DNA of 63,760 nt, counting the filler, from Hausera hauseri (Eukaryota): NCBI GenBank assembly GCA_046269625.1. It is 11 parts of 11 records of this genome, joined end to end, with 100 filler letters (N's around TTAATTAATTAA, not from the genome) between each part and the next. Parts side by side here need not be neighbours in the genome. Positions count along the whole stretch, not along the records: positions 53,884 to 59,649 come from JBJURY010192194.1; 10 more parts are not named here. One strand, written 5' to 3'. The stretch's first letter is position 1. Every line of letters begins with the position of its first letter. The notes under the pieces were generated by a model. That model saw only the letters and a program-made list of their open reading frames with translations, did no database searches and was not told the origin of the DNA. Shown piece by piece: positions 2,451-59,649 of this stretch. The translations under genes and the position numbers were made by a program.

Positions 2451-3732
2451 CTACTGTGATCAAATATGAGTAAGACTTCCAAATATCGAATCGATATATT
2501 TTTCAGTTGGTAGTATTGCCATTGTCATCTATGTAAAATTTCGTGCCATTGTGTTCATTGGTTAAATAGTTATGCTTGTGCTTTGTGAACAGCCAAAAGT
2601 GAATTCATCAATTTTTAAAATATCTCAAATTATTCAACAAAGAAACATTAAATTTTGTGCGCGGAATGAAATTTGTCTCAGAAACGTTCAACATGCTGCA
2701 AAAGGAGTTTGGTGACAATTCTGTGTCAAGAGCAAGTGTTTTTGATTGGTATAAGTTATTCAAAGACGGTCGAGAACGCGTTGAAGATGAACCACATCCA
2801 AGACGACCAAGAACATCTACTGATAAACAACACATCAATGAAATCAAAGATTTGGTGCTCGAAAATCGTCGATTGACAATTAGAGACATTGCTGATGCTG
2901 TTGGTATTTCATTTGGATCGGTCCAAGCAATTTTGAAAGACCACCTGAACCTTAAACGCGTCAAATCTTGATTGGTTCCAAAAACATTAGATTTCTTTGA
3001 TAAAGAGCGTCGTGTTAATATCTGTAAAGAGATGTTGTCTGACTATGAACCAGTCATAAAACGCATTATTACGGGAGATGAGACTTTGATCTATGTCTAC
3101 GATCTAAAAACAACTGATCAATCGAGCGAATATCGTGCCAAAGATCAAGCAAGACCGAAAAGATTACGCAAAAGTCGTTCAAAAATCAAGGTCATGTTAA
3201 AAGTTTTCTTCGATTATCGTGGTACTATGCATTCAGAATTATTTCCATCTGGCCAAACTGTTAATATGGAATATTATTTGAATGTTATGCGTCGTTTGCG
3301 TGAAGCTATTCGCCTCAAGAGGCAGGAATTGCGGCGAAACAACTCTTGGTTTTTGCATCATGATAATTCACCTTCTCACACTGCATTGGTTCTTCATGAC
3401 TTTTTCGCCAAAAACTCGACCCATATCATTCCACAACCACCGTATTCGCCTGATTTAGCACCGTGTGACTTTTGGCTATTCCCAAAACTTAAGAGATCGC
3501 TCTGGGAACACCGTTTTGACTCGATTGAGAAGATACAAACCGAATCGAAGAAGGCACTGAAAGCCATTCCGGAATTTGAATTTAGCAAGTATTTTGAGGA
3601 TGGGAAAAAACGTTGACATAAGTGTATTGTGTCGGATGGGGATTATTTTGAAGGCGATGAAATAGATTTAGAAGAATAAATAAGGATTTAAAAAATTATA
3701 ACCAAAGTTTTACTCATATTTGATCACAGTAG
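2451..3732 (+). mobile_element. Tc1/mariner (DD34D) transposon, full length, inactive
   Basis: TIRs CTACTGTGATCAAATATGAGTAA(G/A)ACTT at 2451 and inverted ending 3732. The right flank is TA and the left flank is CA. Length 1282 bp. Confidence 0.95.
2608..3681 (+). pseudogene. Mariner transposase pseudogene
   Basis: HTH region (WYKLFKDGRERVEDEPH..RP, RRLTIRDIA) and catalytic motifs TGDET, HHDN(S)PSH, YSPDLAPCDF. In-frame TGA stops at about 2969 and 3614. Confidence 0.93.
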
Positions 3733-4574
3733 TATCATGTCTTTTGTATCTCTTGAAGACAGTCTACAATTTATTGAATTGTATTGTGGATATGGAGGAA
3801 AGAAAACATTTGGGACTTTGTCTCCATAGTAGCAAGGTTCTGTTCAACGTTTATATATGATTAGGAGGCCATCCGTACCTGTATTTCGAGACTTATCAGG
3901 ATAAGTTGAAACTCTTTGACTCTCTATCACTAGAATGGACGCTCTTTCATTAGGATAATGGAGCCCCATGTCATTTGGGCAAAGGTTACTTTACAGTGGC
4001 TTATACTAGGGTTTCCAGCCCGGGTAACCGGAAAACTTCCATTTTTATTAAATTTTAATAGCCTTGGAAAACCTGGACTGACAAAGCTTAACTCAGGGGG
4101 GCCCGATTTCTTTTATTATTTAATTAGACATGCAATTAACGAACATGTTAAATACATACGGAACTATCGAATATGTACAATACCATTCATATGCACTGGA
4201 CACAATAACTATTTGGAAAATAAATAATTTTTCTTATCTTAGAAGCAATATGGCGAAGAAAGTTTTATCGAAAATTCGTATACGATTTTTGTTCGATTTG
4301 AACTAGTCGAAGCTGAATGAATATTGTGCCTCAATAGTTAAATGGATGCTTTTTAAATTTTTTAAATAAATTTGTGAGACGGCCAGTTTTTTATGTTCTC
4401 AGAAAATATTATTAAAATTCCACTGGTATATTCAGAATTATTACCAACAATTAAATAAGAAACATCGGATAATTTTTTATTAACGAGCTTGAAATGGCTC
4501 CTTATTTTCTTCACGCAACTGAAATTTAATTAATATATTTTCTGCTTCTGATTGTGATTAGTTACACTTTATGA

Positions 4575-4674
4575 NNNNNNNNNNNNNNNNNNNNNNNNNN
4601 NNNNNNNNNNNNNNNNNNTTAATTAATTAANNNNNNNNNNNNNNNNNNNNNNNNNNNNNNNNNNNNNNNNNNNN
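4575..4674. other. Artificial contig-joining linker (first of ten)
   Basis: N44-TTAATTAATTAA-N44, with stops in all six frames. The same linker occurs at 11928-12027, 20767-20866, 27666-27765, 31925-32024, 35979-36078, 41775-41874, 49590-49689, 53784-53883 and 59650-59749. Confidence 0.98.
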
Positions 4675-4703
4675 ATTTATATATGTGTGTGATTATAAAC
4701 AAA

Positions 4704-5340
4704 ATGTACGAGAAATGCATCACCAACGACACGAAGCTCCAGAATAATGCAATTTTCCAGATTTTAGGCCCCAATGTAAGTGGAAAAACGCACTTTGTGT
4801 GTTAATTATTTCAGACCTACCGTGACGTGTTCCATTCACTGCCGTACAATCACATTCACTGGCATTAGGATGTTGGTGATGATGGTGAGTCCGGTTTGAC
4901 ACATCGTGAATTTTGTAAACTAAAATCGATAACTGTAATTGATGGATTTGATGAGAACTGGTCAGAAATTACGCAACGGTGACGTTATTGTCATCGACGA
5001 TTTATTTCTGGAAGTCACGAAACAATCGGACTTCAACAACCTGTTCACGAAGATTACACGACACCGCGGTGTGACGATTATTTTCATTTTACAAAACATG
5101 TTCCATCAAGACGGACATCATTGAATAAGAAATATGAACGTACACTATTTGGTGTTGTTCAAAAATCCCCGTGATCAGACTATCATTTATTATGTTGCAC
5201 GACAAACATTTCCTCACAAGCGAGCCTACTTGATAGATGCATATCAGAATGCTACAACCGATCCACACGGATACTTGTTTATTGACCTTACACAACATTG
5301 TCTCGATGGCATGCGTGTATGAACAGACATTTTCAATCAG
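4704..5340 (+). pseudogene. Polinton A32/FtsK-like DNA packaging ATPase
   Basis: Walker A ILGPNVSGKT (4761), Walker B VIVIDDL, then RHRGVTIIFILQN, N..YLVLFKNPRD and PHGYLFIDL. Frameshifts and stops are present. Confidence 0.88.
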
Positions 5341-5604
5341 AAAGATGAATGTGCCTATAAACAAAATCGAAAATCAACAACATGATTATCATGAAAATGA
5401 AGAATTTCCGAAAAACAATTGTTAAATGTAAACCTACCAAGCAGGTGTCCGACAAAAAACGTATATTAAAAGGAACTGCTACAGTTAAGCGATTAATTAA
5501 TTCTGTGATTCGAACAACAAAAGCAGCAACTAGACGCAAATTACCGTCACAGTGGCAACGGTTGTAAACAACTACGTCTCATTAGCATCAATACGTCCAA
5601 AAAC

Positions 5605-5931
5605 ATGCAATTCAAACGTAGTCAGCCTTACTTTATTGCTTTGCTCAGGGCACCTATCAGACATAAGCGAAACATGCTGCGATCATTCCCGCAATTTGTA
5701 GCAGACGATTTGATAAAAATTTTATACAATATCGTTGTGGGTCACGTTGACATTTGTAATGGAAAGCGGAATTTACTAAAGTATCGAAAACGACTCATTG
5801 GCCTTGCCAACGTCCGTAGTAAACAACTGAAACGAGATGTCATGTTCCAGCAAGATGAAGGATTCCTTGGTGCAATTCTACCGATTGTCATGTCATTACT
5901 TGGTGGACTCATTGGTTCTTCAGCAGCATAA
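5605..5931 (+). CDS. Polinton small conserved virion protein with C-terminal amphipathic tail
   Basis: 108-aa basic ORF ending QQDEG-FLGAILPIVMSLLGGLIG, located between the ATPase and integrase. Confidence 0.65.
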   Translation: MQFKRSQPYFIALLRAPIRHKRNMLRSFPQFVADDLIKILYNIVVGHVDICNGKRNLLKYRKRLIGLANVRSKQLKRDVMFQQDEGFLGAILPIVMSLLGGLIGSSAA

Positions 5932-6075
5932 TATAAACAACGACGGTAAGTATATGATGATTGGGCGATATGGGTGCATAGTTTTCATCATTTTGCACCA
6001 GTTTACCGAATCTATCATGAAAGTTTCGTTCAAATTGTTGTAATGCAAACAAAACCGGCACCATCAACGACAACG

Positions 6076-7110
6076 ATGGGCCACGTGTGGTTCGACCCGT
6101 GTCATCCTGTCGGGTATACTGGCGTCGACAAACTGGAAAAGACTGTCAAACAGACTCGGCAACAGATCCAACGTTTGATCGGGAAACAGTTAGCATACAG
6201 CCTAAACAAACCGATAAGAATGCGGTTTTCAACTAGTGCATACCGTGCTGCCGGTGTAAATAATGTATGGCAAATGGATCTGGTAAAAATTATTTCGTAC
6301 GCCAGCATCAACGATGGGTATCGTTACGTGCTGATGTGCGTTTTTGTGCTTAGTTGTTTTGCACGTGCAATTGCCGTGAAATCTAAATCCGGTAGAGATT
6401 GCAGACGCTGTTTAGACACTGATGCTACAACAACAGAAACAACAGTCGAAGCATTTACAAACGTATTTGAGTAAGGAATTCTACAACGCCTATGTTGCAA
6501 CGGTCTTAAAAAGGTTCGGCGTAAACTACTACTCGGTATTTTCCAAATACAAGGCTGCACTCGTTGAACGATTAAACGAACATTGCGCGGTCGCATAAAC
6601 AACTTCATTACGAAGCAAGGAAACAAACGCTGGATAGATGTACTGCCGGATATTATTCATGCATACAATCATTCGAAACATCGTGGCATCAATGGATTAC
6701 GGCCGGTTGACGTTATCGATGGTTTGAACATGTGGCTTCATATAAACCGAACACAACAACAGAGAATTAAATGCCCAAAATATAAAATCGGTGCTTACGT
6801 ATGTATTTTGAAAATAAGTACGACGCTACTCATTAAGAATTTCAATAAGAACTGGAGCGACGAGGTTTCCCGCATTTCGGCAATTAACACAAAACAAACA
6901 TCTGTCATGTACGTTTTAGAGGACGAAAACGGTGAGTAAGTACGCGCTAATTTCTACGAACGGGAACTGCAGGTACTGCTCGGGAAATCCCATGTATATC
7001 GTATTCAGGAAATTCTACGTTCACGTGGCAAAGGTTCGAATAAACAATATCTCGTCAAGTGGCACGGATACACTACACAGAGTTGGATATTTGCACCACA
7101 GAGTGAGTTA
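6076..7110 (+). pseudogene. Polinton retroviral-type (rve) integrase with C-terminal chromodomain
   Basis: WQMDL, YRYVLMCV.VLS.FA.A..VKSK, ER..RTL, RWIDVLPDII.AYN.S.HR.I, KNWS.E. The chromodomain reads YRIQEILRSRGKGSNKQYLVKWHGY..SWI. Several frameshifts. Confidence 0.9.
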
Positions 7111-8156
7111 TGAGCATTTATTTGGTATTTGATAGTAACAGATTATCAGAACATGAAAACAACAACAATACCGCTGAAAGGTTTACCATTGTGTTGGTCC
7201 AACCATTCAAGTTACGCCAGGAAGCCTGAGAAGTGGCTTTGGCGGAATTCACATTTAAAATTTCACCAATATCAATGTGTGAGAACAGTAAAATATACTA
7301 TACTCTACTAAGACAATCTCCTGCATCTAGTCGTTTGCAGTTAGTCCGAGACTCTAATGAAATATTTCACGTTCGCAATTACAAACGACAATATTTCCGG
7401 GTTTATATTTTTCATTTAAACAATCAATTGGTGCTAAAACACAAACAACAGATTGAATTGCAATTTAAATCACTAGCCGACACTCAGGCATGGGGTTTTC
7501 AATCTGTCAATTTGCGCTCGAAAGGTCTAGAGCTCGGTGGACATAGTATAATTAGTGAAAAATTGAACTTTTCCGAAAACACCATGAAAACTACCGATAA
7601 TACAGTGAATTAGCAAAAGACTGAATCATTCTTTTACTCTCATACAAGAGGAACTGGTTTTCTTACGGAAACGGAAGCAGAATTGTGCGCAAATATCAAG
7701 GCAGTAGCTAAATTGGCTCTCAATACATTTGAGTTAAACTTTGATGGTCGTATTTACTTTACACTACATGATAATGTTACATATTTTGCCTTTGATGAAC
7801 TATTAGAACGGAATCTGGGTTTTAAGAAACGAGAATTCCGTCAAACCGGTGGCGGGCGGCCAATTGTTGCTAAACAAAAACCACGTGTCTACGAAGCATT
7901 TCATCGAATCAATATTTTAACCTATCTAACTGAACCCGTATATGCTGGCGGAGACCGTAAACAACTATCGGCTTCTATTGTACTGGATTCGGACACATCC
8001 AAAATATCGGGCGAAACTGCTCACGTAAATATCATCCGGCCCATGCATTTATCATTGTCTCACAATTTTGTGCACAGTATTTCCGTCTATGTAGTAGACG
8101 AATTTTGGAAACCCATTAAATTTCTGTTTGGAGCCAAGACATATTTGATGCTATAA
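7110..8156 (+). pseudogene. Polinton minor capsid protein (penton), paralog 1
   Basis: N-terminal MSIYLVFDSN...EVALAEFTF. C-terminal LTEPVYAGG..QL, RPMHLSL...ISVYVVDEF.KPIKF. Confidence 0.72.
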
Positions 8157-8229
8157 TTTTTGTCGTCATCGTCGATAATAAACAAACTGTGTCATTATTA
8201 TCATTCTCATCATCATCATCATCGAGATC

Positions 8230-9348
8230 ATTAGTATTTACGTGGCGTTTCTAAGCAACAGTTGCCCGACGACTCGTCCGAACAATTCAGCCAGTGAATA
8301 CGTTACATATTGGAACAATCCTTTGGATTCATCTAGAAAATGGGAGGTTGCACTTACGGAATTTAACTTCCCCTACGAACCGGTGACATTGAAAGGTAGT
8401 ATGAAAATAACGTACAGCAAGTCTGCGACTGAAACAAAAACACATTCTTGTCCTTTGACAGTTACTAACAATAAAATAACAAATGCAGAATCGGCCATTT
8501 GCATAACCAACACAAATTACGATTCATACGGCAAGATCGGTGTTTTTATTTTAGGGGAAAACTTAGATTTTGTGGCAACTTTTGAATTTACTGTCACCTT
8601 TGAGTCCTCTGATGTGGCACAAAACTTTGGATTCAAAAATATAGAGCACAAAGGTAAACATATAAAAAGTGAATATGCATTTGCACCAAAATGAAGTCCC
8701 GTACATTACCAGACAACGGTGAAATATACCTATACAGCACAAAGGGTGTCAACACCATGCGTATTGATTGAAGACAATACCTGTTGCAAATCTGTATCCC
8801 GTCTCTGTCAACACTTTTTAAACCAAAAGTACAAGGTGATATTTAATGTTTTCGAGTCAGGTGCAAATGGATACATTAAATTTGAATTGGCTTAGGATAT
8901 TGTCGACATTTCATTGGACAAAGCTTTGGCCATGCTATTTGGTTTTGAAAAACAGCGGTTTGAGGCATCGACAAATACGAACACGGCGGTGGCATATGCT
9001 GCAACGCTTAAACCCAAATGAAAAACTGGTCTAAGTCAAATGTACATTTACGTGCATGTCACCGAACCTATTTTGGTCGGTGGAGTACGTGTACCGCTAC
9101 TCCGTGCAATTTATCCCGAAAGTAGCAAGTATACTGCTGGCGACAATGTCACTGTCAAGCTCGATAATCCAATGTACCTACTTGTGGCATCTACATCTAT
9201 AAACAATGTTGAAGTAAATGTCAGATGTGACGCGGGATACCTTATTGAATTTCCGTACGGTACCACAACCAGTCTAATTCTTCATTTCCGTCGAATCCAA
9301 CAACAACAAAAACATGATGGATTCCGAAATCGTTTCCATTTACAGTAA
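8230..9348 (+). pseudogene. Polinton minor capsid protein (penton), paralog 2
   Basis: FLSNSC...NSASEY...PL....WEVALTEF. C-terminal MYIYVHVTEPILVGGVRVPLLR...NPMY....INNVEVNVRCDAG..I.F..G.TSLILHFRR. Confidence 0.82.
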
Positions 9349-9673
9349 ACCGCAGCATGGTAGTAAACTGCCGTATTTTGTTGGTAAACAGTATGGCTCT
9401 GGATGGTTGCGTACACTGGCACGTTTAACATTTTCAGTGTTGAAGCGTATTGGAGTCGTGGCAGCAGAAACCGCACAGGATGTACTATATGAAAACAAAT
9501 CGACTTTCGCATCACTGAAGAAACATGCCTTGTTAGAAATAAAAAGCACTGCACCGGGAGTCGTTGAATCAGTCAAAAAACAATTCGCTGGCAATGGCTT
9601 GAGAAAACGCCGTAGAGCATCATCGAGCTCATCAACTATAAATAAACGTCGTTGTCTCACGATTTTCGATTGA
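9314..9673 (+). CDS. Polinton basic core-like protein (adenain-substrate type)
   Basis: QHGSKLPYFVGKQYGSG motif, QFAGNG, and an Arg/Lys-rich C-terminus ending IFD. Lies immediately upstream of the major capsid gene. Confidence 0.7.
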   Translation: MMDSEIVSIYSKPQHGSKLPYFVGKQYGSGWLRTLARLTFSVLKRIGVVAAETAQDVLYENKSTFASLKKHALLEIKSTAPGVVESVKKQFAGNGLRKRRRASSSSSTINKRRCLTIFD

Positions 9674-9684
9674 TTGATAGACAA

Positions 9685-10917
9685 ATGGCATCTACAAAAT
9701 CTGAATTGCTTATATTTGACAAAGCCGCACCATAAGTTGTTATTTACAATGTAGCATTTAAAGAAATCTACCCCTTTGATTCTGTTTCAACGAGCGATAA
9801 CATTGGCATTCAATTCAACATTATGGTATCGGACAATGAATATCACGATTTTATCGATACACTACTTTATGAAAAAGTCACTGTTAAAAAGGATGAATCA
9901 ACGGTTCTCGGTGCAACAGGCACTGTCACATCGGCTATTTATTTTTTCCTCACAATGTTCCAGGAAGCTTCACTGTCTTTAAACAGCGTCAAAATTGAAG
10001 GCAACACCGGTCTATACAGTATCGAAGCACCCATTGAAACAGCTCTGAATTACAGTACTAACACGAAAACGACTCATTTGACAAAAACCATCGGATATGA
10101 CGCCACTGCAGCAAACCGTCAGGTATGGGTGGCAGAATCAAAAGATCTTACAATACGTGGACCGCTGTACTTTGACTTTTTCGATCAGTCGAAATACCTA
10201 CTGCCCGGTGTTAAAGCATGATTTGGCTCAGATTCAGCGACAATGTCTTTTGTTTGAAAACTGCAGTTACAAATCTCAAACCCATACTGAAAATTACCGA
10301 GGCACGAGTATACGTACGTCGTGTAAAGGTAGAACCATCTATGCTAATGGGACATCGATTGGGCTTGGAAACACAAAATGCCTGTTATCCATTAAAACGC
10401 ATAGAACTCGTGTTTTACACTATATCCCAAGGTTCAACTACGTTTCACAAAAAGTCACTGTTTGACGACATGCGATTGCCGAAATTTGTGCTTGTTACAT
10501 TTCAAACGACCGTTCCACAAACGGGCAGTTATACCACCGATACGGAAACGTTCATCCATAGCAATGTAAATTACATCAGTTTGGGTAAAAATGAGGATTT
10601 CGTTGAGACATACGAGCAAGATTTTGAGACCGGCGATTATGTTTGCACATATATGCAATCTATCGTGCGCAACATGGGTTTACTGAACAAAAATGTTAAC
10701 AATGGCACATCGATGAATTTGTTCAAGTCCACCTATCCATTCTTCACCTTTGTCCTGGCTCTATATGATGACATTGAACAAATTCAACTATCTCAGCAGG
10801 GAAACCTACGACGGGATGTTCACTTTGGTAGTGTTGGAGCAATCTACCGTGATGTACATTTACGGTGTATTTAATGCCGAGGTTAAAATAACGAAAAACG
10901 GAACCGTCATTGTATAA
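9685..10917 (+). pseudogene. Polinton major capsid protein (double jelly-roll, hexon-like)
   Basis: Starts MASTKSELLIFD, then GPLYFDFFDQSKYLLPGV, LKITEARVYVRRVKV, A.YPL.R, LPKFVLV, QGNLR.DV.F and YGVFNAEVKI. Stops and frameshifts are present. Confidence 0.88.
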
Positions 10918-10967
10918 ATAAAATCCGCTGTGTCTCACCTTTTTGTTGTACTATGAAGTAATTTATT

Positions 10968-11366
10968 TTGACAACTACTACTATTGTGCTTAAATCACAT
11001 TTTACATTTAGCTCAACTGAGTTCAGTCAGTACGGAAAACTGCTCTTGGACGCGAAATTTCGTGGCATGTTTCCACTGGACTGTGTGCATCGTGATTTAC
11101 GACAAACTGGCGGCTTCACTGTCAATACACATACTTTGTCGTTACCTAGAAAACATTGGATTGCTGTGTACGTCCATCCGACCAACGTCGTCAGAGTATT
11201 CCATCCGCTTGGATTTTACTATCCGTTATCGTTAGTTTCTCAAATTGAAAGATAATCATTATCATCATACCATGTTGAATATAATATACTTCATTATTAA
11301 TATCCAATGACTATACTGTGTGGCCATTGATGCTTATTGTGGATTACATTACAATCAGTTTTATAA
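10968..11366 (+). pseudogene. Polinton adenain-like cysteine protease
   Basis: FRGMFPLD, VNTH....KHWIAVY, F(H)PLG and a downstream LCGH*C catalytic-Cys region interrupted by stops. Confidence 0.85.
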
Positions 11367-12564
11367 AATATATTTTATTTTGTTGCTGCTTTTGGTTTCT
11401 GTGTGTATGTGCAGTGAAATTCCGTTTTGTAAGCAAAAAACATAAAACTTGATTTTTAGAGCAATGATGATGATGATGATAATGATTTTCAACGACGATT
11501 TTCACAGACTTACAATCGTCTGATCGTGAGGAGGCAATAATATGAAATGCTCAACTATCGATGGGCTACGTTCTCAACACATTTCCACCACCGACTGACT
11601 TGTGCATGGGGAAATTTTGCCCATTTGAAATTTTCCCATCGAATTTTCCCCATGTCCCACCGTCCGACAACGTTGCAGCCGTGTCCACTGCAACCGCCAA
11701 TATCGGTTTACCCCTTGTAAGCATTTTCTGAGTGCTAGCAACATGTTTCCCGTTATACGTGAAACATTTCCTGTTTTGCTTCTTCCTCTTCTAGCGCCTC
11801 TCCCTTACATTTTAGTTATACCCCACATATATTAACTTTTGCTTACCTCGTCACGCGCTATCGATATCACTTTGTCCAAAGTTCATGCTCGACTTCCTTT
11901 TCGGCCGAGGGGTCCTGCGAAATTTTTNNNNNNNNNNNNNNNNNNNNNNNNNNNNNNNNNNNNNNNNNNNNTTAATTAATTAANNNNNNNNNNNNNNNNN
12001 NNNNNNNNNNNNNNNNNNNNNNNNNNNATACATACAAAAATTTTTACACAGTTTATACAAATTTTGCGCAAAACTTAGACAAAAATTAAATTTGGTCGTT
12101 TGGGAGATAATTTATAATCACCAAATATAACATGCGTGGTATTATCAATTAATTTTCGTTGCTTTTAACAATTATTAGCATAAAACTTTCGTGTTTAATA
12201 AATAGAAGCTGTTATGAAAAAAGAAGACCACGTCATGCAAATAAATCAAACAAATTTGAACCACTTTATTTCATTTTGAGCTGCTGAGAGCAGTCAACAC
12301 AAACTACGTTAACAAAAAGGAATAGTATCAAATCATTAAATACCTATTATATTACAAAAAGATCCAAATTACGATCCCGACAGCGAATACAAATAAATAG
12401 TTTATTTGCAATTTACAACATAAACTTCCACGAGGATAAAAATATAAGAATAATAATCTAGATCAGTGGAAAACAACTGGTTGCAGAATTTAATGTAATT
12501 AGATTTATGTACATATCGTATCTTTTGTACAGAATTTATACAATCTGAAAAGAAAAGAAAAATA

Positions 12565-15500
12565 TCAACAGATTCCTCGTAATTCCGAAAGAAAGAAATT
12601 TTCCAAACTATCGGCTGACTGATATTCACGCGTTGATTTGTCGTAGTATGTTCGACATGCTGTGAAAATTTTGTGTATGTCCAATTTGAAAGAACCCAAA
12701 TTCGAATATTTCATTCGATCTAATCTGTCTCGGGCAGTCGTCAGATCTGAACCGGAAACCATTAGTCATCACCCGTACGGCAAATATAAAAACATACCCA
12801 TCGGTGATCGAACTACTTTGTAATAACCCGGACTTTTCTTTTGATCGACAGGATACAAAAATGACACGGCGTCTTTATGTTTCTAAACAAAACACAAATT
12901 AGATGAAATATGATAAAGTTGTCCAATTAACCATCATTTTATTTAGCAGATCTGACAGCTTTTTGTGAATATCTGAATCGACTTTCCTTTCGTGATCAAA
13001 TTGAAAAGAACTCGACGATTGTTCTTTTTTCATCTTCTTCTTTCCTTTACCCTTAGAACAACTTGGGCATTTATAACTGCCCTCCATCTGTGTTGCTTCG
13101 TTGTCTGTCAGCCCAACACACGTTGGATGGTACCATTCATCACAATAGTCACAGGCAATATACAATCTGAATGTGAATGGTCAACAACCATAATTTTATC
13201 GGGTAAATAAGGTCACTTTGTAGGATCGTATGTTTTTCTACAACTGCAATAAATCTGATTCAAGTCCTCTTCAATTGGTTCCGAAGATTCATCTGATTTG
13301 ATACCGCTACAATTCTGGCATTTCCACGATTTTATCTGAGAAGCTTTCTTTTCGGTCATTCCAACACAAGAAAAATGAAACCAATTTAAACAAACATCAC
13401 AGCCAATGTAGTTTCTAATTTATGTCAATGTCAAAAGAATATTAGTAAAATGAACGTAAAAACTTACAGAGAACGATTGTATGGAGTTTTACAAATACAG
13501 TACAAACTGGATTCGTCATTACTTTCCGTTAATCGCAGTTTCTTCTCTAATTTTATTTCCTTTCCTGATGGAACTGTTGGTTCATGTGCATTTTTATTGG
13601 ATTTCTTCCGAGTTTTGGATGGAGTTTCTATCGGAGATAGATCTTCTTGGTACAGTTCAGCGTCGGAATTATAAGATTCTTTGTATGATCGCTTTTTCTT
13701 CACACCTTTTCTTGAAGACAATCGGTAGTTGTGCGTTGACGAGTCTGTTTCAGCAGCGTTTGCAATGCGTTCTTCGAAGTTTGCATCCACAGCCGGAGAC
13801 GTACTACCGGTTTCAACTTCCCGTTCGGTAAGTTCATCCGAACTACCTCGGTCTTTTTTCGTTTTCTTAATTTTTTTCGATTCTTTCTTCGCTAATTCGT
13901 TGAACTTCAGATCATCCAGTTTGTTTTGTGCGCGAATTGTTTCAATGTCAACAGTGTTTTGTTTCATTGAAATCATTCGATTGGAAATGGAACGTAATCC
14001 GCTGTCAAGATCGGTACATATATCGTCAAATTTGTTATCTTCACTACCCGTAGATTCTGATCGTCGTGACGATGACGTTCTATTACGACCTCGGCCTCTG
14101 CCGCGTATTTTACCGCGACCACGACCGCCAACTGTAAAAGGTACATCTGAGCGTGACATTTCTCGAATGTCCGTAAGGGGAACCGGAAGCACTGCAGGTA
14201 TATTGCTCGACTGAACAATTATGGGAGTTGACTGCATATCACATTTTGTATTTTCCACAGATGGAACTTTAGGAACCGTAGATTCAACGATCAATTTAGT
14301 TGATTTTATATCGTTTTTCATTACAGTCATATCAGGTAGAATGTTTGTCTGCTTTACAGTCGTAATCGGATTTTCAGGTGGGATCTGTGGCTTTTCGATA
14401 ATTGAAGGCACTGAGTTTTGCACCGTTGTGCTACAAATGATATTGTGCTCAATTTTAACAGGTTCGATTACCGGGTTGACTGGCTTTGGCATTTCGATGT
14501 TTGGAACAATCGAAGCAGCAAACGGCATAACCGGATAAGGAATTATTGGTCGTTGTGGAATCGGTGCGTCGTTTTTCTGGAATACGCGTTTATTGAGAAT
14601 AGAAGAAACCAGAGAATTGTGGCATTTAGGTTGAACAACGAAAGACCTTTTCCATTGAACATGCATTAAGAAATCTCTAATTTCCCAAAGTCCTAGATCT
14701 TCTTCACCCAACCATTCTTCGGAATACTTTTTTTCTGAAAGTCGGACTTCGGCCGTTTCTTCGGCGGTTTTGTAACGTGAGCGACGACTACGTGGTTTTG
14801 GAGTTCTATTAACACCTGGTATAAAATTCGGATCAGAATCTTCAGAATCTCGTTCACCGTCATCTGTGAAATTATCAGTATCAGCATAACGTGCCACTGG
14901 CCGGCGACCTCGACGACTCACCCGTTGTTTATTACCTGAATCCGTAGACTCCTCTGGTAATGTCGATATACAAATAGTAAGTAAATATGTGCATCGAGTA
15001 CAATATTTATCTAGTGGCCTCCATCCAATTAATTTCCGTTCCAACATATCCCCATTGGATAAAGTCTCTTTGAAAATATTTGGAAACTGTACTGAAGAAT
15101 TGACATTGTTTTCCCAATTAAGTAACATGTCATCCCAACGCAACGAATACCATAAAATCTTAAGACTCAAAGCTAAAGATGAAAGTCCAACGGATCCGAA
15201 ACTTTTAGATTTGTCGGTAGATTCCGATTGCGGTTCGGTTGCAAAGAGGTTACTGAATTTTGAGATTTTCTCGTAATTTTTGTTGAGAACTTGTGATACC
15301 CCGTACCTCCAAGTTGTGCAGAAACTGGGTCGGGCCGACGGATATGGCCAGTAGACGTTATTTGGACGTTTCTTTTCAACGTCGAACCCAGGGACTTCAA
15401 TTCTACCGCTTGCAAGAACTAAAAGACGCAAGGATTCCTTGCGAAACAGGAAAATATTTTTAATGTTGGCGCTATCTGTCTCATCTGGCCATCGGAAATG

Positions 15501-53883: not shown

Positions 53884-55300
53884 CGCTTCATCATCACGGA
53901 CCAGGGTCCACAGTTTGAATCCAACCTGTTCAAATCCCTTGTTAACCTATTGGGGATCCACCACATACATATTACGCCTTATCACCCCCAATCGAGTGGC
54001 CTCCTAGAACGTTTCCACCAAACATTGCAAACGTCACTACGAATCCTCGCAGAGTCCAACATTAGTTAAACGAATCTTCTTCCCATCGTTCTGCTCGGCT
54101 GGTGGAACACTGCGTCCACTTCTACAGGATGCTCACCTACTGAAGCCTTATTCGGAGCTCCTGTACGATCATTATTCGAAATAACCGCCCTATACGACAC
54201 TCCCACTGATGAGACCATACGGACGGCACAAAATCATTTCCTCGAGGTCAGCAAAGATTCGTTCTGCAGGCTATTTCACAAAGACAAAACATACTTACCC
54301 AAAGATTTGTATTCGGCAAGATTCGTGTGGTTAAAGAATCAGGCGCCTTGGGGTTTCCAACCATGTTACCTGAGGCCCTGTAAACTGATACAGCTACACT
54401 CACACAACGCCATTATCTCTAAAGACGGCAAAGAACTTACAGTACACATTACCAACTTAAAGCCCGCTTTTTATGTTGACGACACCTTACCAACCGACAC
54501 GTCAACCTCTTTTCTCATTCCTCCACTCCCTGCTATCCCTATATCTATTGCTACATCATTTCCACCTTCCCCTTCTGCGCCTAGTCCTGCTCTATCATTT
54601 TCTACACTTTCTACTTCTATCCCTACCACTCTTCCTATCGCTACCATCCCTTCTGTTTCATCTTCCTCTTCCACTCTTTCACCCAACTCAATTCAAATTT
54701 CTACTCCAACTTTTTCCTCTCTTCCATTATTAGTCACTACACATTTCATCACTCCTTCGTCTTCTAACACTCTCTTCAATGCCTTTAACCATCCGTTAAA
54801 TGCCTTTAACAATCTCTCTTCCTTCTTCGACCTCTTCTTCTCTTTATTTTGACCCATTTTCTCACGACACAACACCTACACCAAAATCTACCAATTTTTT
54901 CCCAACCTCAATCTCTGCAAACAAACACATCGCATAAAGACAAAACACGCAGAGTCACATTCAGCAAGTATAGCAGGGTAAAATCGATAGAAGGTACCCA
55001 ACGTCTTGTTCACACTAAGATCCGCTGACACAGACACTTTTCGTTTTGCGATCTTTTCTCTCTATCCTTTTACTCTTCATGGTTTTAACTTCCCCACGGG
55101 AGGGGGTAATGTGGTGCCCACATCGACCGCCGCCCACTGGCCCATTTGGTTGGGTACGGCCGGGCGTCCGCTGCCGGCGCGTCGGGCCCATAGGTGGGCC
55201 CCGATATTCCTACTCTTCGCTGTAAAAAATTCAATCCATAATTTATCGAAAATGATCCTATATTTTATACTCATCTTTCGTATTTCAATTTTGAATGCTA
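53884..55300 (+). mobile_element. Gypsy 3' fragment: integrase end, S/P/T-rich tail, PPT and LTR start
   Basis: ITDQGPQFESNLF, ITPYHPQSSGLLERFHQTL and VHITNLKPAF. PPT GGGAGGGGGTAA then TGTGGTGCC at 55110. Confidence 0.85.
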
Positions 55301-55346
55301 TTTATTACCTTTACATAAAGTCAAATTTTACACGAACCTATCTGCT

Positions 55347-55930
55347 ATGATTCCACTTCAAATTGCTCCATTCAAATATGAACCGAATTCCAATGAATAT
55401 AAAGACGTACTCATCACGAAAATTGAACGAATCTTGCGACCAAAATTCTCATGCGACATCGTCCTGTTTATCAAAGAAACACCATTTTACGGTCATCGTA
55501 TTGTTCTTGTTTCAGCCAATCTCTACTTCTGCTGTCTCGACGAATACGATTTTAATTCCACCATGCGAAAGACTCATACGAGAAATAAAAGCTGTGGAAG
55601 TTGTCCTTTGGAAACTACGCATGAACTACAAACTACTGGTAATGCTCAGAAACATTGAACATTTCCTTTCCATCTTTTGGGTTATTGAATCTTGTATATC
55701 AACTTTTAGTGCCAACAGTATATATCCGCAGTACAGCAAGGACCAAATTACTCAATCAATTTATTAACTGATGGTATAAACGATTAGCGTGCTTCATGGT
55801 TGTTGGATAAGGTCCGTGTGGCAATTTTGGCAGATTCAGTGTTTCGTGTACAGACTTTTCTGTAATTTTAAACGTGTAGAAAAGAAATTTTTTAAATAAT
55901 GTAAAGGTCTGTTTTCTTCAAGTGAAAAAC
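55347..55930 (+). pseudogene. BTB/POZ (Kelch-like) gene fragment
   Basis: CDIVLFIKETPFYGHRIVLVSANLYF matches the BTB N-terminal motif. A broken continuation follows near 55770-55920. Confidence 0.6.
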
Positions 55931-55989
55931 TTTTGGATTTAAAAAATACAATCGATTTTAGCAGCCATATTGAATTTTTTTTCAATTTA

Positions 55990-56129
55990 GATTTCATGTA
56001 TCAAATACAGCGACTTATTTTATTCTGCCGATTTTATTTGATCCTACAATTTACGATATTGGATTTATCATCGTCTAACATACGTCGTTTTCTTTCGAGG
56101 ATCATAATATTGGTGTCAGAAGTGGGATT
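55990..56129 (+). mobile_element. LTR 3' end plus tRNA-Leu primer-binding site
   Basis: TCATAATAT-TGGTGTCAGAAGTGGGATT (56111-56129) is complementary to the 3' end of eukaryotic tRNA-Leu (...AATCCCACTTCTGACA-CCA). Confidence 0.75.
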
Positions 56130-56177
56130 ATTGGATTGCTTGAAATCAGTAATCGGTAATGAATTGAAAATTACAAA

Positions 56178-57284
56178 ATGATAAATAATTCTGTTGAGAG
56201 CAAATCAATTTTTGTTTCGGGAGTTATTGAAGGATTTCATGGACGCTCCTGGACGCCAAGTCAGCTGTTTGATTTATTTCAGAGATTGGAGAATTTCGGA
56301 ATGAATACGTACGTTTATGCACCGAAACATGATTCGAAACATCGACAGTTATGGCGCACTTTATATACGAATGCAGAACTTATGCTGTTAAAATATCTTA
56401 TTGAAACATCAAAGCTGTGCAAGGTAACATTTGTTTATTGCATTTCGCCAGGTTTAGCCATTACTTTTTCTGATCCTACGGATATTTTCATGCTAAAACA
56501 AAAAATGTTGCAGGTATCTGAAATAGGCTTTGAATCATTTACAATGCTTTTTGATGACATTGATTCTAATTTAAAAGAAACTGATTCAAAAGTGTACAAT
56601 TCGTCAGCTCAAGCTCAGGTCTCAATAACAAATGAAATACATGATTTTTTAAAACGTCAGAAATTGTTTTTCTTTTGTCCAAAAGAATATTGTGGAACTC
56701 GAGCTGTTCCATCTGCTAAAGAGTTTGACTACCTAAAAACTGTTGGAGAATTTTTATTACCAGAAATTCGCGTTTTGTGGACTAGTCCAAAAGTTGTTTC
56801 GAAATTTATTCCGGTACTGTCAATCATTGAACTATCTGCCTTTTTGCGACGATTTCCTTTTATATGGGACAATATCCGCGCTAATGACTATGGTCAACGT
56901 AGACTTTTCTTGGGTCCGCATTATGGCCGTTCATCGAGTCTAATTCAATACGTCAGCAGAGTACTTACCAACCATAACTGCGAGTTCGAGGCTAATTATA
57001 TCGCAACCCACACGTTGGCTCAATGCACACAATGTTATAGAAAAGCGCTAAAATGTGCTGTTGTCGATTGGCTGATGGTTTTGTGTGATGTCGATAAACA
57101 TTTCGAAAATACACACAAAGTGAACAAAAAATTAATTATCGACAATAATTCATCAAATATACAGTTCTATACTGTTTCAAAAACACACTGTCAAACCTTT
57201 GCAGGATATGACTGCTCAGATTTTGATCCTTATACGCTGCAATTGAACTGCCAAATATTGCTACCATTCAATACCCCCAAGTAG
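56178..57284 (+). pseudogene. OGA: O-GlcNAcase (GH84) copy, intronless, C-terminally truncated
   Basis: GVIEGF(H)G, YVYAPK(H)D.KHR, ISPG, FDDI (catalytic DD intact), CPKEYC, WT(S)PKVVS, WDNI(R)ANDY and NCEFEANY. Several normally invariant residues are substituted. The ORF ends in the inserted element at 57280. Confidence 0.88.
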
Positions 57285-58561
57285 TGTGAAAATGTGCTTT
57301 CGGTCCCACATCAGGGGGGATCGGTAAATCGATTTTGCACATGTGCCGATCGATAGTACACACTGTGCACCGTTGCTAAGGGCACTTTTGCACTTTTCAC
57401 ATATCGATCGCTGCACATAGCACTATTGATCGAATCGATCGGTACAAAGTGGTAATCGATAGAGCACATCAAGGCGCATCGATTGGTGCACTGTACAAGT
57501 GTGCAGCGCATGTGCAAGTGTGCAAAATCAATAATATTGGATTTTCGAGTTTTCAAAAATCGATCGTTGGGGCTCGGGACCGGGTGCAATCGGTAGTGCA
57601 CTTGATGTTGTATATGAATGTGCAGTTAGAATTTAAATCGATTGATTGGTTTTCGAATAATTCGCAAGTGGGACCGAAGGCACATAGGCCTTTCCGGTAT
57701 AAATTTTAAATCAATGATATCAAAATGGTATATGTACAGGTGTGTGCAGTAGACGATGCACTTTCAATCAGTGCACAATTCAAGTGTGCATTGATTATCG
57801 ATCGGTGTGCAGGCGCACTTTTCACTTTACAAACTTTTGCAATTGTGCATCCTAGGATTGATGGAATTGATTGGGATCAAGAGCAGTTAGATAGAGCACA
57901 TCGAGATGCACCTTGACGGATGATGTGCAGTGCAAAAACATGCGTGCAAGTGTGCAAAAATCAATAATATCCTATTTTTGATAAATCAAATATGGCTGAT
58001 TAGCACTTGTGACCGGGTGCAATCGGAAGCAAACATGATGTAGTATATGAAAGTGCAGTTAGAATTTAAATTTATTGATTAGATATTGATTAATATCGAT
58101 CGAAACTTCAAAATGGTTATAGTTTCAGTGTGTTTTAAGCGTAGAGAAGCAAAATTCAACCCAATATTGCGCGGGGACAAACAGGAAATCAAGTATGCTG
58201 ACCTCGAATATCGAGATGAAAGTTCGATATTCGAAGATTTTCGAACTCAAAAATCGAAGTTCAAACTATTCGAAAAATGTGATGGTGGGAATCGATTCCC
58301 CATATTCGAAGACCCCCAAGTACATAAAAATTGCATCTCGAAAATGTACTGTATAGTCATAAAATCAATATTTCCAATTAAGCAAAATGTGCATTTAAAG
58401 TGCAGTAAAGCGGAAATCGATAAATCCTTAAGCGTACATGCCACCGTTGCTAATCACTTTTGGATCGATAGTGCTCCGGGTGCACTACCGATCGGCACAT
58501 GTTCAAAATCGATTTATCGACTCCCCCGGGGGTGGGGCAGAACCGCCATTTTCACACTACT
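57280..58561. mobile_element. 1.28-kb non-autonomous TIR element with AGTAGT termini (mini-Polinton-like)
   Basis: AGTAGTGTGAAAATG ... CATTTTCACACTACT, with the imperfect inverted repeat extending about 85 bp. Internal direct repeat with a period of about 430 bp. Dense in GTGCAC/TGCA/ATCGAT. No coding capacity. Confidence 0.85.
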
Positions 58562-59649
58562 TACATCGCATATTAGATGATGGAGTTTAATATGCAAGAT
58601 GGGAAAAATTATTAAGTCCAGATAATTATAAAGAAGTGATGATGAATTTTCTGAGAACATTGTCAAGAGGTTTTATAAAATTTGGTACCGTGTCAGCAGG
58701 AATTTTCACAATTTATTTAAGAGTTCAAACAGCTAAAGCCATTCTTTCATCATTACTAAATGCATATGAAATATATACTCTTACAGGTGTTTCGTTAAAA
58801 ATACTATCTGTTGTTTAACACCATTTGGTATGATATTAAAAGCGCATGATGAAAAAAGATAAAAGAATCTGGTAGAAAAACATGTTAATCTAGACAACAG
58901 AAAAAAGAACGCCACCAAACACCTCCACCAAGAATGAATATTGAAAACAATACCTACACAGAAGCAGCTATGACAAGCACAAATATCCAGAACTTTCCTC
59001 TAATTACTGAAAAGATTGAAAAGGAAATTAAATATCCTTATGGGTAGCATGAAAACAACAGGAAATTAATTGTTATACCAAGAGCACTTAACCAGACTGA
59101 TTTAATATATAGTGAACAACTTAAACAATTATGTCAGTATCCCGATTTAACATCCCTAGCACAAAATTGGAAAACAACCAGACCAGTGTCATCACCAAAA
59201 TTTACTTCAATTAGACCATCATCTCCATTACTAACTAATTCAATTTTAGTAGAAAATAAAACTTCTGAACTGCCGCTAAATGGCAAATTTATAGTTGAAA
59301 ATGGTTTCATTAGAACTACAGGTGTATATTCTTTATTAGCTTTAGTTGAAAATCCTAATAAAAAACAACTTCAGTCTATAAGTCGTACACACGAGCCAAG
59401 ACCACAAACCACCATACGTATTCGAAATATAAAAATAAGTGCTTTAATTGATACAAGAGAAACAATGACTCTGATACATCAAATGCTTATCTTAATGAAA
59501 TATCAACATGAGATAAGACTATCAAGTCATCAAATGGAGGTAATACATTACTTTTTGGACAGACAGTATTTTCTGCAGGATATTGGACTACTGAGATAAT
59601 TATTTATGAAAAATAATTAATAGTAACGATACAAGTAATGAAACAATTA
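58562..59649 (+). mobile_element. Gypsy gag-protease remnant
   Basis: RPQTTIRIRNIKISALIDT(R)ETMTLI resembles the retropepsin A-L-I-D-T-G motif, preceded by broken gag-like ORFs. Confidence 0.55.

Follow-up and report, generated by a model that had tools for sequence, protein, structure and literature searches.

How does an intronless O-GlcNAcase (OGA) coding sequence come to lie directly behind the primer-binding site of a long terminal repeat (LTR) retroelement? The question was raised by an earlier note on a stretch of 63,760 nucleotides from Hausera hauseri (GenBank assembly GCA_046269625.1), 11 parts joined end to end, which is called the window here. The piece analysed was positions 53884-59649 of the window (JBJURY010192194.1), and the scans for a second LTR, for repeats and for domains were confined to it. 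We put at about an even chance that 55769-59649 represents the 5′ portion of an LTR retroelement, chimeric and defective, that carries a fragment of OGA complementary DNA (cDNA) and was copied a few times before it decayed. Capture by an LTR retroelement is favoured by the shared strand, order and phase of the parts, by their low copy number, by the sense orientation of the OGA and by its decay. We infer the LTR, an origin through RNA and a joint mobilisation of the parts.

Copy-number figures were taken from the contigs of three public runs (X1, X2 and X3). X1 contains 51% of the sampled words; from its size and even coverage we would guess that it is genomic DNA. Unique (single-copy) X1 contigs have a depth of ~6-15, and this was used as the baseline.

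Identity and decay of the OGA reading frame

The open reading frame (ORF) of 368 codons is intronless, sense-oriented and of glycoside hydrolase family 84 (GH84), as the earlier note had described it. It was assigned to the Pfam family NAGidase/GH84 (PF07555) with an E-value of 8.5e-66, over profile positions 2-264 of 295. Alignment to structures of human OGA (5UHK, 5M7R and others) was gap-free over human residues 60-333 (E ~1e-98), so the ORF is intronless over at least 0.9 kb.

To define how much of the protein is present, a profile was built from 37 full-length metazoan OGAs (843 positions). It matched ORF residues 7-311 only (model positions 11-306), which span the catalytic domain and first stalk helix; downstream of residue 311 this profile of full-length proteins matched nothing. 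The last 57 codons of the ORF are open and have no detectable homology. The stalk is otherwise missing, as is the acetyltransferase-like domain. At the other end the copy begins at the normal N-terminus, as does the related protein P0060, and the 5′ end of the coding sequence is complete.

The catalytic Asp-Asp pair is kept as D125-D126 in the motif FDDID (residues 124-128), a pair that we take to align with D174-D175 of human OGA, and most sugar-binding motifs are present. The near-invariant columns used as a measure of decay were those at least 93% invariant among 38 metazoan OGAs (n = 79). Fourteen of the 79 are altered in the window copy; among the 38 metazoan OGAs the median is 0.5 and the maximum 8. 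The replaced residues include Y to H in GFYGRPW, T to K in CPTEYC, G to S in WTGPK and P to H in TNPNCE. An open frame and catalytic pair alongside lost invariant residues had been claimed before, and these counts bear the claim out.

In a quick tree the window OGA grouped with P0060 (385 residues, 53% identity) with a support of 95 in the Shimodaira-Hasegawa approximate likelihood ratio test (SH-aLRT). The terminal branch of the window OGA was 0.96, against 0.41 for P0060. None of the 1.84 billion protein representatives searched exceeds 58% identity, and alignments that cover most of the ORF reach 53-56% at best; the bird representative of the vertebrate OGA cluster was at 56%. The nearest named relatives are spread over birds, fish, sea urchins, molluscs, crustaceans and tunicates. 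No OGA relatives were found in scans of viral contigs or metagenome contigs. A protein of Schistosoma rodhaini (P0059, CAH8555359.1) was considered as a close relative and rejected: its top score came from a duplicated GH84 segment, and its identity is 44%. In the P0059 model the C-terminal two thirds of GH84 occur twice, with residues ~104-314 and 464-674 near-identical, which may be a tandem duplication or an artefact of annotation or assembly.

Taken together, the alignments identify the ORF as a metazoan-type OGA, apparently from a lineage without a named representative. As judged from its sequence, the window copy is a decayed relic and not a working gene today.

Primer-binding site, leader and candidate LTR

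The site in front of the ORF reads TGGTGTCAGAAGTGGGATT (19 nt). This is the sole match in the window even when three mismatches are allowed, and none of 100 shuffles gave a match. The CCA end is not encoded in eukaryotic tRNA genes, and reverse transcription into a tRNA primer stops after 18 nt. A match of 18-19 nt that includes TGG thus indicates a retroelement primer-binding site and not a fragment of a tRNA gene. Consistent with this, ARAGORN found no tRNA gene in the piece, and Rfam gave no match. The site agrees at 19 of 19 positions with the beginning of a published antisense probe against mouse tRNA-Leu(CAA), a probe that opens with the CCA complement (PMC7997516). We regard 56111-56129, complementary to the 3′-terminal 18-19 nt of tRNA-Leu(CAA) with its CCA, as a genuine primer-binding site, and the tRNA-Leu assignment of the earlier note stands.

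The interval between primer site and OGA start codon, put before at about 48 bp, is exactly 48 nt. This leader carries a stop codon in the OGA frame at 56160-56162, which rules out an upstream fusion to OGA.

Upstream of the primer site lies an AT-rich stretch in which a candidate LTR was delimited at 55769-56104. It starts with TGAT at 55769 and ends with ATCA at 56104, and a 6-nt spacer follows; these boundaries are guesses.

Sequence downstream of the OGA

The later insertion that the earlier note had seen after the OGA was delimited as an element of 1,274 bp. Its terminal inverted repeats (TIRs) are ~92 nt long (71 of 92 positions identical without gaps), it is flanked by TA duplications at 57282-3 and 58558-9, and it contains no protein domain. 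By these marks it is a TA-targeting miniature inverted-repeat transposable element (MITE) that is Tc1/mariner-like and of the Stowaway type. The first base of the MITE supplies the last letter of the OGA stop codon (TAG). Within the MITE an internal duplication of ~433 bp was observed (57425-57661 against 57857-58094). The MITE family is hugely abundant, with a summed contig bin depth of up to 880,000 in X1, and is also abundant in X2 and X3.

Reading-through of the OGA phase past the MITE was searched with an X placed at each break. The phase resumes beyond the MITE with nine codons up to a TAA. The sequence that follows, 58591-58815, matched Pfam PF24664 with an E-value of 9.7e-12 (44.1 bits, cut-off 27) over profile positions 521-590 of 653. 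It encodes a hydrophobic segment and a tail, ends in a stop, and shares strand and phase with the OGA. We read it as a C-terminal fragment, not a whole gene, of a fusion glycoprotein of Monjiviricetes/chuvirus type; this env-like fragment is an addition to the features of the earlier note. The same stretch was considered as a remnant of the OGA stalk and rejected: BLASTP, the PDB search and the OGA profile were empty, and the Pfam match is to a viral glycoprotein. No relatives of the fragment were found in the viral contig scan.

A gag/protease-like frame of 52 + 183 codons, with one internal stop, starts at 58889 and runs towards the end of the piece. The motif ALIDT, retropepsin-like, lies near 59440. 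The earlier reading of gag-like and retropepsin-like remnants is upheld weakly: the Pfam match to RVP (E 0.016-0.025) is under the cut-off, and the look-alikes of the ORF in the protein atlas, which are gag/aspartic-protease proteins of retroelements (0.81-0.85), are a lead only. A word search with the gag/protease ORF for an element family returned nothing. The superfamily may be Gypsy, as the earlier note had it, or BEL/Pao; reverse transcriptase and integrase would lie outside the piece.

Copy number and other copies

X1 site depths over the OGA are 20-92, with up to 8 distinct contigs at one site. Downstream they are 63.6 at 58817 (the end of the env fragment), 67 at 58920, 155 at 58965 and 41 at 59130. 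The protease part is high copy, with depths of 3,400-13,500 at sites 59291-59318. From bin means the downstream part had been taken as a high-copy family unrelated to the OGA; this was rejected, as the site depths are low over 58817-59130 and high only in the protease part. By these depths the LTR-like stretch and the primer site belong with the OGA, the env tail and the gag-like part in a single low-copy class of roughly 3-10 copies.

The OGA contigs listed in X1 differ from the window copy by 4-14%. Some of these other copies have frameshifts, namely a 2-bp deletion (56718) and an insertion of AT (57254). At eight sites the OGA letter of the window is contradicted by every X1 contig; one, four and three of these fall at codon positions 1, 2 and 3. 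Five of the eight are non-synonymous, and at three of these the other copies retain the conserved residue (T in CPTEYC, V in PVIWDN and V for A180). Such changes at conserved residues, unique to the window, indicate that its OGA has been accumulating changes without constraint. In the run of a second, related organism (C), OGA contigs were 90-94% identical, and part of 55621-56199 was also present.

Two X1 contigs join 56154 directly to 56198, so leader and OGA are carried together in other copies; the sequence on either side of the joint is also covered by several diverged contigs. Missing at this joint are 43 nt (56156-56198), a stretch that includes the OGA start codon and has GT..AG ends, the sole such pair among the 11 skip joints listed. 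The gap could be a mini-intron lost in the DNA copy of a spliced RNA, or a chance deletion. A word search with the C-terminal piece of the OGA for copies that span the OGA-env junction gave no candidates.

Table 1. Features of the analysed piece, in window coordinates.
Feature	Position	Strand	Basis
3′ part of an unrelated high-copy LTR retroelement	53884-55238	+	Pfam and contig depth
Weak BTB/POZ-like ORF, then overlapping ORF in another frame	55347-55767	+	Pfam, PDB
AT-rich stretch, candidate 5′ LTR end (U5)	55769-56110	+	Position relative to primer site
Primer-binding site, tRNA-Leu(CAA)	56111-56129	+	Identity to antisense probe
48-nt leader	56130-56177	+	Sequence
Intronless OGA ORF, 368 codons	56178-57284	+	Pfam, PDB alignment, OGA profile
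MITE-like TIR element, 1,274 bp	57284-58557	.	TIRs and TA duplications
Nine codons and TAA, in OGA phase beyond the MITE break	58561-58590	+	Sequence
Viral fusion glycoprotein, C-terminal fragment, 75 codons and stop	58591-58818	+	Pfam PF24664
Gag/protease-like remnant, 52 + 183 codons	58889-59599	+	Weak RVP match, protein-atlas look-alikes

Origin of the composite

From the primer site through OGA and env tail to the gag/protease remnant, every part lies on the plus strand, with the OGA between the primer site and the gag/protease part. The four features thus share one strand and follow the 5′ to 3′ order of a retroelement, which we count as canonical, yet the position of env before gag is not. 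Under capture, retroelement RNA would have been joined during reverse transcription to a transcript of the host OGA or to one that was read-through or chimeric. The composite of OGA and retroelement would then have been copied a few times, and all its copies would have decayed afterwards. In the window copy a later insertion of the MITE at a TA would have created the present stop codon. The capture of a host mRNA had been proposed in the earlier note; the cDNA-like OGA, its sense orientation and the leader junction shared with other copies speak for that proposal, and the LTR on which it relied was not recovered.

Several results weigh against capture. No direct repeat of 55235-56135 was found elsewhere in the piece by a repeat finder, by blastn at word size 7 or by local alignment compared with shuffled scores. 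No second LTR, polypurine tract or target-site duplication is visible as far as the end of the piece, which falls in the protease region; a 3′ LTR may be located past this end. A parental OGA gene did not come to light either, no protein representative being above 58% identity. The CA nearest the primer site is 6 nt off, slightly more than usual. X1 covers the LTR-like stretch at low copy, by 2-4 contigs with depths of 12-27 at sites 55765 and 55973, and by these rough contig depths the stretch is not above the OGA (20-92) or the gag-like part (64-155). A mobile LTR family should show at least twofold depth at its LTR, and the low figure argues against one. The BTB-like ORF upstream is also low copy in X1 (bin depth 60-150), which fits co-duplication of a larger segment. 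The env C-terminus precedes the gag-like part, a non-canonical order that needs more than one rearrangement. The X1 figures are Logan contig depths from a run of unrecorded library type, and are rough only. With no second copy in the piece and low copy number in the reads, 55990-56110 could not be confirmed as the LTR end of the earlier note and is a candidate only.

The strongest rival is an unrelated juxtaposition, which we consider less probable than capture though a serious contender. It holds that an OGA retrocopy made by a long interspersed nuclear element (LINE), or a fragment of a gene duplicate, was brought by deletions next to a leftover stub of U5 and primer site and next to the env fragment, and that the whole was multiplied by segmental duplication. 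The surroundings are a transposon graveyard with at least four unrelated repeats, and such an origin would agree with an LTR-like stretch no more abundant than the OGA, with a BTB-like ORF at similar depth, with the lack of a second LTR in the piece and with env placed before gag. It has to account, however, for four features on one strand and in element order with OGA and env in one phase, for which the chance of an accidental arrangement is perhaps 1 in 20-50. Neither a poly(A) tail nor retrocopy flanks are visible, and the distance from primer site to OGA ATG is just 48 nt. The 43-nt variant with its GT..AG ends points to an RNA intermediate that ran across leader and OGA. Two other mechanisms fit nearly as well as template switching: insertion of a LINE-made retrocopy into the element, and unrelated juxtaposition with segmental duplication.

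The ORF is very unlikely to be the OGA gene of the host itself, or its only one, with a single exon, a retroelement stub inserted upstream and a MITE in the 3′ part. The 368 codons stay open in DNA of 36% GC and the catalytic pair is kept, as this reading would have it; protein searches gave no closer OGA, a weak point since proteins of the host seem to be absent from those collections. Real OGAs reach at most 8 altered near-invariant positions and the window copy has 14 of 79, its terminal branch has over twice the length of its sister's, and at three of the five non-synonymous sites the conserved residue survives in other copies. The stalk remainder and C-terminal domain are absent, with a viral glycoprotein tail in their place, and there are several diverged copies. 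An assembly chimera, with the neighbourhoods of primer site, OGA and env mis-stitched at repeats, is the least probable of the rivals: the piece is repeat-dense, X1 covers about half of the sampled words and no single contig spans the stretch, but unitigs of the public run bridge the leader-OGA junction (X1 may be the assembly's own sample and then would not be independent), 55235-57164 is low copy, which makes mis-joins unlikely, and the MITE is bounded by clean TA duplications and has inverted repeats that match.

The earlier note had further suggested, as speculation, that the OGA could once have been an anti-silencing cargo. This found no support, as the window copy is truncated and mutated and other copies are frameshifted. 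We consider it highly improbable that the element was once mobile, expressed the captured catalytic domain from its leader and profited from the cargo, for example by removal of silencing O-GlcNAc marks. If an ancestral OGA was expressed, this was possibly as a fusion to the membrane-anchor tail of env.

Upstream neighbours

The high-copy retroelement at the start of the piece opens with the end of an integrase core (53884-54066; Pfam rve_3 E 2.5e-5, rve E 1.1e-3). The integrase C-terminus and a Ser/Thr/Pro-rich tail follow without a stop over 54070-54849. X1 site depths over this element are 440-75,000, and the high copy number stops at ~55236-55238. No similarity was found between the element (53884-55238) and 55235-56135.

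Two side observations were made on this retroelement. A low-complexity tail of ~120 residues (Ser, Thr, Pro) continues its integrase ORF stop-free at 54480-54849. Near its 3′ end, at 55100-55210, lies a GC-rich island of ~65-70% GC in a context of 31-45%, which contains a perfect 7-bp hairpin (GGGCCCA/TGGGCCC) and has no Rfam match.

In the BTB-like region the signal is limited to the first ORF (55347-55658), and the overlapping ORF in another frame extends to 55767. The Pfam match to BTB is under the cut-off (E 0.0055-0.0096); all 14 of 14 weak PDB matches are BTB proteins (E 0.03-0.7). The ORF is absent from the contigs of organism C. It is either flanking host DNA or a second captured fragment.

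Comparison with known systems

Gene transduction by LTR elements, with good documentation in retroviral oncogenes and in plants, and their capture of chuvirus-type glycoproteins are already known; OGA as a cargo was not found in the literature search. That search, for O-GlcNAcase together with LTR retrotransposon capture, returned no report and only unrelated papers on mouse embryos. Few host-gene transductions by LTR retroelements have been described in invertebrate-type animal genomes. Should paired LTRs flank the OGA unit, an animal genome would offer a clean case of a retroelement with an enzyme of a chromatin-linked signalling pathway and a viral glycoprotein remnant beside it. The value of the window copy lies in its record of a capture mechanism. 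For annotation it is a warning, as an open GH84 ORF of 368 codons should not be named an OGA gene.

Compared with canonical metazoan OGA, the ORF has a GH84 domain of ~55% identity, the DD pair and most sugar-binding motifs; it differs in the missing stalk remainder and acetyltransferase-like domain and in the 14 near-invariant residues replaced. It resembles LINE-mediated processed pseudogenes in being an intronless copy of a normally multi-exon gene that decays neutrally. Unlike these, it shows no visible poly(A) or flanking duplications, has retroelement parts of the same orientation on both sides, and has its leader-OGA junction in several copies.

Captures by plant LTR retrotransposons have been described for maize Bs1 and in surveys of rice and sorghum (PMC7264820, PMC3726574). 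A gene transduced in an LTR retrotransposon typically has the sense orientation and occurs once or in a few copies (PMC7264820). Likewise, the OGA fragment is in the gag-pol sense and in few copies. In the plant cases both LTRs are documented and parental genes identified, whereas the OGA case has a candidate LTR only and lies in an animal-type genome.

The env-like fragment has its counterpart in mosquito BEL/Pao elements, where a glycoprotein of chuviruses (Jingchuvirales) was acquired as env by LTR retrotransposons (PMC7642597, PMC10084718). As there, a fusion glycoprotein of Monjiviricetes type stands beside retroelement sequence. Unlike there, only its last ~70 residues are left, and these lie upstream of gag/protease, not downstream of pol.

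In retroviral gene transduction, as by acutely transforming viruses, the order is LTR, leader, captured cDNA, partial env and LTR. The present case departs from it in that the carrier is endogenous in an invertebrate-like animal, that gag/protease-like sequence and not a 3′ LTR follows the env remnant, that the LTR is a candidate only and that the OGA cargo bears no sign of selection. As in the transforming retroviruses, an intronless host coding sequence in sense orientation follows the primer site and leader, it is 3′-truncated, and its carrier is defective. The OGA is also, as in those viruses, in phase with the C-terminal env remnant that follows it.

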